A DNA stretch of 64,000 nt, taken from NCBI GenBank assembly GCA_950097015.1, contig CATNEN010000003.1, forward strand, positions 8,494,001-8,558,000, given 5' to 3'. This document shows, piece after piece, positions 7,783 to 45,087 of this stretch (position 1 is the first letter of the stretch; each line of letters starts with the position of its first letter). This DNA is from Macrostomum hystrix. Taxonomy: Eukaryota > Animalia > Platyhelminthes. The notes under the pieces were generated by a model, which did not search any database, was not told the DNA's origin, and saw only the letters and a list, made by a program, of their open reading frames with translations. The translations under genes and the position numbers were made by a program.

Positions 7783-8025
7783 TGTGAGAGATACAATTCA
7801 GACTACTTACAACAGTAGAAAAGCAAAGATTTGGCTGCAAAACTCTCACATAACACTAAAAAAATATCGCCATAAAAATAGCAAGCTTAAAAGATACTTC
7901 TGGGCACACTGAGAGTGGTTTCTGGCTTGTTTGCCTTCGTCAGTCAGCCATAGCCACACGCCATCCTCTCCCACCGGTCTCGGTCTGCCAGCGCGAGGTT
8001 CGTTCCCCACTTTTAGTGTGTTACA
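7783..8025 (+). mobile_element. Solo-LTR-like element, copy 1 (hammerhead core inverted)
   Basis: TGT...ACA termini with flanks TTAAT/TGAAT (5-bp TSD, 1 mismatch). Reverse-complement homologue of 44633-44873, except that 7920-7972 is inverted. Confidence 0.8.
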
Positions 8026-44341: not shown

Positions 44342-44632
44342 CTTATTCCCCGGATTCAGTTTTGCTGTTTATCCTGTGCTAAAAATAGTTTTTACTTTAA
44401 CTTGGAACTTCATAGGATTATTCGGAGGATAGTTGACACATGGCCGAAAGTACTGGTACTATGATTTCAGCAATCTTTTATATTCTGTGCTAAAATTAGT
44501 CAGTTCGATATATAAACTGCAGCAAAAATACACAAATATTTTTGCTGCAATTTTTTTAAACAAATGACAATGTAAAATGTATCAAATCCAATATATATAT
44601 AACAGTTCTGAGAACATAAACTACATCATAAC

Positions 44633-44873
44633 TGTAACATACTAAAAGTGGGGAACGAACCTCGCGCTGGCAGACCGAGACCGGTTTCTGGCTTGTTTGC
44701 CTTCGTCAGTCAGCCATAGCCACACGCAGTCCTCTCCCACCACTCTCAGTGTGCACAGAAGTCTCTTTTAACCTTGCCATTTTTTGGCGATACTTTTTAG
44801 TGTTATGTGAGAGTTTTGCAGCCAAGTCTTTGCTTTTCTACTGTTGTCAGTAGTCTGAATTGTATCTCTCACA
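44633..44873 (-). mobile_element. Solo-LTR-like element, copy 2, with an intact hammerhead ribozyme
   Basis: 241 bp, TGT...ACA termini, perfect 5-bp TSD ATAAC at 44628-44632 and 44874-44878. Confidence 0.85.
44673..44715 (-). ncRNA. Minimal type I hammerhead ribozyme (predicted)
   Basis: GGCUGA-CUGACGA-A-GGC AAACAA GCC-A-GAAAC-CG-GUC^-UCGGUC. Stem I is 6 bp (two G-U), the core CUGANGA/GAAA is present, stem III is the palindrome ACCGGU, and the cleavage triplet is GUC. Confidence 0.7.
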
Positions 44874-45087
44874 ATAACTTTGATAATTGAGAAAATAAAC
44901 AAAAAATAAAAAGCGAATTCACGAGGTCGATAGTCTTTCTAAAATCGCTTTTGATTTCCTGATATGACTACTGCCGATCGGACAGTAGTAAGTATAGATT
45001 AAGACAGGAAGATCTGTAATTCATTATATCATTTGTATGTCTAGTAGCATATATATATATACATACTAAAATAAGGATGTGTCTTTG

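Follow-up and report, generated by a model that had tools for sequence, protein, structure and literature searches.

The stretch analysed here, hereafter the window, comprises 64,000 nt of the flatworm Macrostomum hystrix (contig CATNEN010000003.1, positions 8,494,001 to 8,558,000 of the forward strand) and contains a 241-bp unit with TGT...ACA ends, placed between two perfect ATAAC repeats as the initial annotation had read it. The minus strand of the unit carries a type I hammerhead ribozyme motif, and around this motif there is a tRNA-like module, which the initial annotation missed. In the reading preferred here, which is held at about even confidence, the unit is the solo long terminal repeat (LTR) of a short non-autonomous LTR element of the Helenus or TRIM (terminal-repeat retrotransposon in miniature) kind, and this LTR holds a tRNA-like/hammerhead module of the retrozyme type. 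In this reading we infer the LTR origin, the TRIM ancestor, the capture of the module and any cleavage.

In the 220-Mb assembly (42 contigs), the unit belongs to a repeat family of at least about 230 dispersed copies. Its first 29 nt showed 193 genome matches (up to 2 mismatches) and its last 24 nt 228 (up to 3 mismatches), with none for the reversed-pattern control in either case, and the best 40 matches to the unit are all full length, 97–100% identical and spread over many contigs. Among 41 distinct full-length copies read with their flanks, the 5-bp target-site duplication is perfect in 28, has one mismatch in nine and is absent in four, the chance of a perfect duplication being 1/1024 per copy. 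These copies measure 240–245 bp, except two with small insertions, and their duplicated target sites vary, with a weak G-T-N-A preference. The family is young, with a median divergence of 1.2% from its majority, and at least four diagnostic sites divide the family about half and half and thus define subfamilies.

Across the family, TGT...ACA ends and 5-bp duplications of fixed length form an insertion signature of the integrase type, as the initial annotation had proposed. This signature differs from the ragged, variable pattern of target-primed reverse transcription and of Penelope-like elements (PLEs); the ragged ends without duplications that would have spoken for a Penelope-type repeat are not what the copies have. 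The terminal inverted repeat of the unit is limited to TGT.A.A.A. Unit size, TG..CA ends, the 5-bp duplication and the lack of a real terminal inverted repeat are all points for an LTR. Contigs from four other public runs cover 44630–44873 only and then continue into differing flanks, with their ends exactly at 44630/44633 and 44873; therefore, the same borders exist in other individuals. Joints or circles were not seen in the contigs of these four runs, which cannot reveal RNA ends.

Table 1. Features of the 241-bp unit and of its second copy in the window
Feature	Position	Strand	Basis
241-bp solo-LTR-like unit, TGT...ACA	44633..44873	minus (hammerhead/tRNA-like strand)	read from sequence
Left target-site duplication, 5 bp, ATAAC	44628..44632	none	read from sequence
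Right target-site duplication, ATAAC	44874..44878	none	read from sequence
Type I hammerhead, 53 nt	44669..44721	minus	aligned without gaps to the canonical family, from which 7 pairs differ in a compensatory way
B-box-like GGTTCGTTCC of the tRNA-like module	44652..44661	minus	lines up with GGTTCGAATCC in the other hammerhead family; GGTTC is the Helenus criterion (PMC10886601)
T4 run, possible terminator of RNA polymerase III (Pol III), immediately following the tRNA-like module and 11 nt from the unit end	44644..44647	minus	read from sequence
Half of the unit without ribozyme, with 8-bp terminal hairpin stem TGTGAGAG/CTCTCACA	44745..44873	minus	
Second copy, nominal hammerhead strand (ribozyme core inverted, on the other strand)	7783..8025	plus	flanks TTAAT/TGAAT

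On the minus strand the hammerhead reads GGC UAU GGCUGA CUGACGA A-GGC AAACAA GCC-A GAAA CCGG U C / UCGGUC U GCC. It is composed of a closing stem GGC/GCC, an internal loop UAU/U, a 6-bp stem I GGCUGA/UCGGUC, a stem II GGC/GCC with an additional A-A, and A-CCGG-U. The core elements CUGACGA and GAAA and an N-U-H site, GUC, are all present in the sequence, and the cut (slash) is predicted after the C at 44679, that is, between 44679 and 44678. Most family copies among the matches listed have an identical core. With a helix I of 6 bp, a helix II of 4 bp and a helix III of 1 bp with a palindromic 4-nt loop, the motif is, by the definitions in PMC4209133 and as judged from its sequence, a canonical metazoan type I hammerhead that would depend on dimerization. 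The label of a minimal hammerhead typical of PLEs, given to it initially, has therefore to be dropped, as the minimal hammerheads of PLEs have no helix III, a helix II of 7–8 bp, a helix I of 4–5 bp and a conserved G10.1-C11.1 pair (PMC4209133).

The hammerhead of the unit and that of the genome's own canonical hammerhead family align over 53 nt with no gaps. When the two families are laid on the hammerhead structure, 31 of the 32 pair cells are standard and seven changes are two-sided and compensatory, namely four in stem I, two in stem II and one in the palindromic helix III. Controls in which the partners were slid by 1–3 columns gave 23–37% paired cells and 0–1 two-sided changes. The minus-strand fold of the initial annotation is thus upheld, and so is the covariation of stems I and II which it had suggested as a check. 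A pattern fixing only the shared architecture matched 207 times in the genome and never in the control, and the 100 matches listed of these 207 comprise only the sequence types of the two families compared here. In the predicted cofold, two copies are joined by an ACCGGU helix between the molecules into a double hammerhead, whose energy is -39.1 kcal/mol versus 2 x -14.9 kcal/mol for the monomers. Judged by these comparisons, the motif belongs to the hammerhead lineage with its fold kept, and the seven compensatory changes argue for past selection on the ribozyme. Conservation within the family was not accepted as support for the ribozyme, since the copies are too young.

A genome search with the Rfam model Hammerhead_1 retrieved a different repeat family, the canonical one mentioned above, at 31.4 bits (below the 34-bit cut-off). 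Its ribozyme, ACUCUA CUGAUGA GCUC CAAAAA GAGC GAAA CGCG UC UGGAGU, lies within a tRNA-like frame whose A box is TAGCCTAATGG and whose B box is GGTTCGAATCC; a T6 run stands where the unit has its T4. Downstream of stem I both families show UGCC, GGTTCG..CC and a T-run. The D-arm/A-box block of this sister family is absent from the unit; the sequence TGGCTATGG fits TRGCY-N-YGG with 2 nt too few, and what it aligns with in the sister family is the anticodon-arm part. ARAGORN called no tRNA on the unit. Through this frame, the ribozyme half of the unit is, by its sequence, tied to the retrozyme/SINE-like (short interspersed element-like) family of the genome. The latter is found at loci L036–L044 (e.g., L039:1137-1728) in partly tandem arrays with a period of ~384 nt, often beside CT-rich simple repeats.

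According to the preferred reading, a TRIM of the Helenus/TRIMp3 kind would have been inserted in trans by the integrase of an active LTR retrotransposon of the genome, and would later have collapsed to a solo LTR through LTR-LTR recombination. The LTR would hold a module of ~100 nt, taken from or co-ancestral with the genome's tRNA-like/hammerhead retrozyme family, with the type I hammerhead at the anticodon-arm position followed by the B box and the T-run. In the two-LTR ancestor, the two hammerheads of one transcript could have paired via the palindromic ACCGGU and excised a unit-length RNA, similarly to plant LTR retrozymes. The solo LTR of a TRIM-like element is the most economical account, because short internal regions favor LTR-LTR recombination and families surviving as solo LTRs only are documented. 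The genome is rich in intact LTR retrotransposons, a further point for an LTR: at least 150 integrase domains were scored of 915 candidates, many of them in open frames of 1300–2600 aa, and therefore helpers exist in the genome. The solo copies of today have no ribozyme partner in cis, and the two LTRs on one transcript that were envisaged at first correspond to no extant mapped copy.

Several results weigh against this reading, most of them from the search for a two-LTR form. Coordinates were listed for ~150 copies and ~90 others are unmapped, so that a few full-length elements are possible. At 30 loci there was no second copy within 1.5 kb, and the paired LTRs with both a polypurine tract (PPT) and a primer-binding site (PBS) that the initial annotation proposed to look for genome-wide were not found among the ~150 mapped copies. 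A PPT abutting either end of the unit was not found genome-wide: three ends are preceded by eight purines, versus about two by chance, and the three tracts differ from one another. No PBS was found for the unit family. The combination of a purine tract and the TGTAACAC terminus gave 13 matches versus 25 and 19 on two control strands (44 in total), with no LTR family standing out; a separate search for a purine tract with a degenerate terminus was dominated by GA satellites and its controls were equally high. The internal region of the two-LTR ancestor is thus purely hypothetical. Of the earlier proposal of a solo LTR from a ribozyme-bearing element, the integrase-type ends and duplications stand, whereas no LTR pair was found among the mapped copies and no PPT genome-wide.

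The module itself adds further points of this kind. An A box is at best partial (TGGCTATGG), and transcription by Pol III would end at the T4 run, within the LTR. The only unpaired cell of the hammerhead comparison is an A-A in the unit family at 10.1/11.1, where G-C is normal; this is the most conserved helix pair of hammerheads (PMC3088659, PMC4209133), and U-U is the best-tolerated mismatch there (PMC3088659). The comparison with the Rfam hammerhead models, also suggested initially, gave no match on either copy, neither at the gathering threshold nor at E<=10 (381-nt stretch). Cleavage by the ribozyme appears doubtful on this basis, and the ribozyme is probably weak or idle because its 10.1/11.1 pair is A-A. 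Lastly, the duplications of animal Helenus elements are 4 bp long (PMC10886601) versus 5 bp in the unit.

Several candidates for a longer form were examined and rejected. Same-strand neighbors within 10 kb form five pairs among the ~150 mapped copies, and none of them is an LTR pair. Three arose by independent insertion, with a separate duplication for each copy; the other two are segmental duplications, whose flanks are identical on either side and which have no reverse transcriptase or integrase genes; the open reading frames (ORFs) in the close-pair regions are of low complexity and encode neither enzyme. A unit copy 3.7 kb from an integrase match is an unrelated solo. Head-to-tail junctions with a gap of 0–12 nt do not occur in the genome. 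The unit's own ends cannot be read as the mini-LTRs of a TRIM or SMART (small LTR retrotransposon) with a PBS, as they are not direct repeats, and TGGGGAACGAACC was rejected as a PBS, being the reverse complement of the tRNA-like T arm and no match to a mature tRNA 3′ end.

The second copy in the window has, as initially described, the same ends as the first; it lies in the opposite orientation, with flanks that match in four of five positions. The initial description did not mention that its central ~55–59 nt (7919–7973) are inverted relative to the first copy. The inversion splits the hammerhead, breaking stem III and the context of the cleavage site, and the inverted segment is bounded by the short inverted repeats GAGACCGG and CCACTCTC. 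Its junction occurs nowhere else in the genome; therefore, the copy was most likely inserted first and its segment inverted in place afterwards. Two 180-bp copies (L054:101-280 and L055:101-281, i.e., G000:C1:17077187-17077366 and C24:6708332-6708512) lack exactly the ~58-nt segment that is inverted here. They have common flanks and a common duplication, CTCAT, and thus represent a single insertion which was carried along within another repeat. The stretch which the short inverted repeats enclose appears to be structurally unstable. The A-A pair, the lack of a cis partner in solo copies and the inverted or deleted core of individual copies argue that the ribozyme is not needed today.

That the 241-bp unit is the whole mobile element, which never had an internal region and was inserted by a retroviral-type DDE enzyme (an LTR-retrotransposon integrase or a Ginger/Polinton-like transposase), is the main alternative, possible though somewhat unlikely. 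The absence of paired copies among those mapped and of a PPT genome-wide agrees with it, and so do the uniform full length of 240–245 bp and the master-copy-like structure of the subfamilies. In the structure prediction, moreover, the minus strand of the whole unit folds well (z = -4.2), with a long hairpin extending stem I and a terminal hairpin at the opposite end, so that both ends carry hairpins. On the contrary, the unit has no terminal inverted repeats such as DNA transposases require, no route is known from a 241-nt RNA without R repeats, PBS and PPT to a full single-LTR cDNA with both att ends, and TRIM families that survive solely as solo LTRs are documented (PMC10886601).

In another, unlikely explanation, an ordinary LTR retrotransposon, either autonomous or a long noncoding derivative, left the unit as its solo LTR, and the abundant retrozyme family supplied the hammerhead/tRNA-like block as a dead passenger that plays no part in the life cycle. 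The A-A at 10.1/11.1 together with the missing Rfam score, the absence of the D-arm/A-box part relative to the sister family, and the ribozyme-core segment, which one copy has in inverted form and another lineage has lost, speak for such a passenger. Unlike decay, however, the seven compensatory changes preserve every other pair, and the vast majority of the copies listed have an intact motif, although young copies say little on constraint.

Quite unlikely is that the unit is mobile and complete in itself as a novel kind of element, namely an LTR retrozyme of animals pared down to a single LTR, whose dimeric or circular RNA, processed by the hammerhead, would be reverse-transcribed and inserted as unit-length DNA by a helper integrase. 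If true, this would account for hundreds of young copies without a two-LTR form. An origin as a Penelope-like pseudo-LTR (pLTR) or as a metazoan non-LTR retrozyme copied by target-primed reverse transcription is hardly credible: the type I hammerhead with a palindromic helix III is as found there (PMC4209133, PMC7229834) and the sister module belongs to a tandemly arranged family, but the ends and the 5-bp duplication are exact, there is no 5′ truncation series, tail or tandem junction, and metazoan retrozymes have no such features and show longer duplications where these are present (PMC7229834).

Copies of the unit were also observed in other contexts. Near a contig start (G000:C1:46-146 kb) and a contig end (G000:C5:5.967-6.071 Mb) they recur every ~23–26 kb in one orientation, a spacing which suggests large subterminal tandem duplications with one copy each. 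Tandem segmental duplications of ~4.0 kb and 6.9 kb (L033, G000:C5:6037500-6047499; L035, C34:7513800-7523799) each include a unit copy without target duplication, and the ORFs inside them are of low complexity, without retroelement domains. An apparent long form of 3.3 kb was rejected, being a unit copy interrupted by a non-LTR retrotransposon. In this split copy (L052:234-3247; G000:C3:9185433-9188446), a 3-kb GC-rich, 5′-truncated non-LTR retrotransposon with ORFs for RVT_1 and RNase H and with a (GAA)n tail is inserted beside the region of the hammerhead cleavage site. Similarly, an apparent clustering of unit 3′ ends turned out to be a satellite carrying truncated units, namely a 4-kb array (L053, G000:C24:1081000-1085400) of the 11-bp satellite CAGTGACTGCT with a 44-bp higher order, which holds three co-amplified 5′-truncated units, each with 127 nt of the ribozyme-free half.

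In a second organism (run X1, organism A), contigs cover only the ribozyme-free half, at 44780–44874, with ~93% identity and an identical outer border; this half is the sole part of the unit also seen there. A family related to the unit may be present elsewhere, with or without the ribozyme module.

Animal hammerheads have so far been tied to PLEs and to tandem non-LTR retrozymes, and LTR-borne hammerheads have been a plant feature. The literature search, whose coverage was incomplete, yielded no report of an animal in which a hammerhead is combined with an element of the integrase type. By uniting a type I hammerhead/tRNA-like module with an integrase-type signature, a flatworm family would link retrozymes, SINE-like Pol III modules and TRIMs. 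The family also lends itself, as a natural experiment, to asking if the ribozyme is useful to the element or travels as cargo. Discovery of a two-LTR form or of circles would make it the first LTR retrozyme of animals; failing both, it would be a clear case of an LTR capturing a ribozyme-bearing small-RNA module.

Compared with known systems, the unit resembles the pLTRs of PLEs in having a hammerhead, predicted to work as a dimer, in the putative terminal repeat of a retroelement. PLE insertions, on the other hand, are without TG..CA ends or fixed 5-bp duplications and are marked by variable ends and duplications, 5′ truncation and a neighboring RT/GIY-YIG ORF, whereas the copies of the unit are uniform at 240–245 bp with a fixed 5-bp duplication. 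A 2026 preprint derives metazoan retrozymes from the pLTRs of PLEs. These retrozymes have type I hammerheads in tandem repeats without LTR, PBS or PPT (PMC7229834). With them, that is, with the metazoan non-LTR retrozymes and Sm-alpha-type repeats (PMC7229834) and the genome's own tRNA-like hammerhead family, the unit shares the same architecture, with a spacing identical base for base, the dimer-dependent helix III, the tRNA-like frame, the B box and the T-run. The differences are that those families form tandem or partly tandem repeats of 150–450 bp without fixed ends, whereas copies of the unit are dispersed singly and have TG..CA ends together with a 5-bp duplication, and that the 10.1/11.1 pair of the unit is A-A.

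For plant LTR retrozymes, hammerheads of type III and duplications of 4 bp are described (PMC4918200, as cited in PMC7229834), along with a PBS, a PPT and circular RNAs of 600–1000 nt (Cervera et al. 2016, PMC4918200); most retrozyme loci of N. benthamiana are given as not full length (PMC9695139). The unit differs from them in its type I hammerhead and 5-bp duplication, and plant retrozymes have a hammerhead in both LTRs whereas no two-LTR copy was found for the unit family. In common are the hammerhead within an LTR-type repeat, the short integrase-type duplication, loci that are mostly not full length, and the logic of two ribozymes on one transcript.

Helenus TRIMs have a tRNA-like sequence in their LTRs, with an A box TRGCY..YGG and a B box GGTTC (Kojima 2024, PMC10886601). 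They probably originate by the insertion of a SINE into the LTR of a TRIM, and some families survive solely as solo LTRs with 5-bp duplications (PMC10886601). Flatworms are not among the hosts in that survey and a ribozyme is not mentioned (PMC10886601). Accordingly, the unit differs in that no Helenus has been described with a ribozyme or reported from flatworms, and also in that no two-LTR copy, PBS or PPT was found for it and its A box is only partial. The likeness to Helenus/TRIMp3 consists in a short LTR with a tRNA-like sequence and a GGTTC B box, TG..CA ends and short fixed duplications. Overall, the pairing of an integrase-type repeat with a hammerhead is known from plants and, in the literature searched, not described in animals, and what would be joined here are a Helenus-type LTR and a retrozyme-type ribozyme module, both of known kinds.
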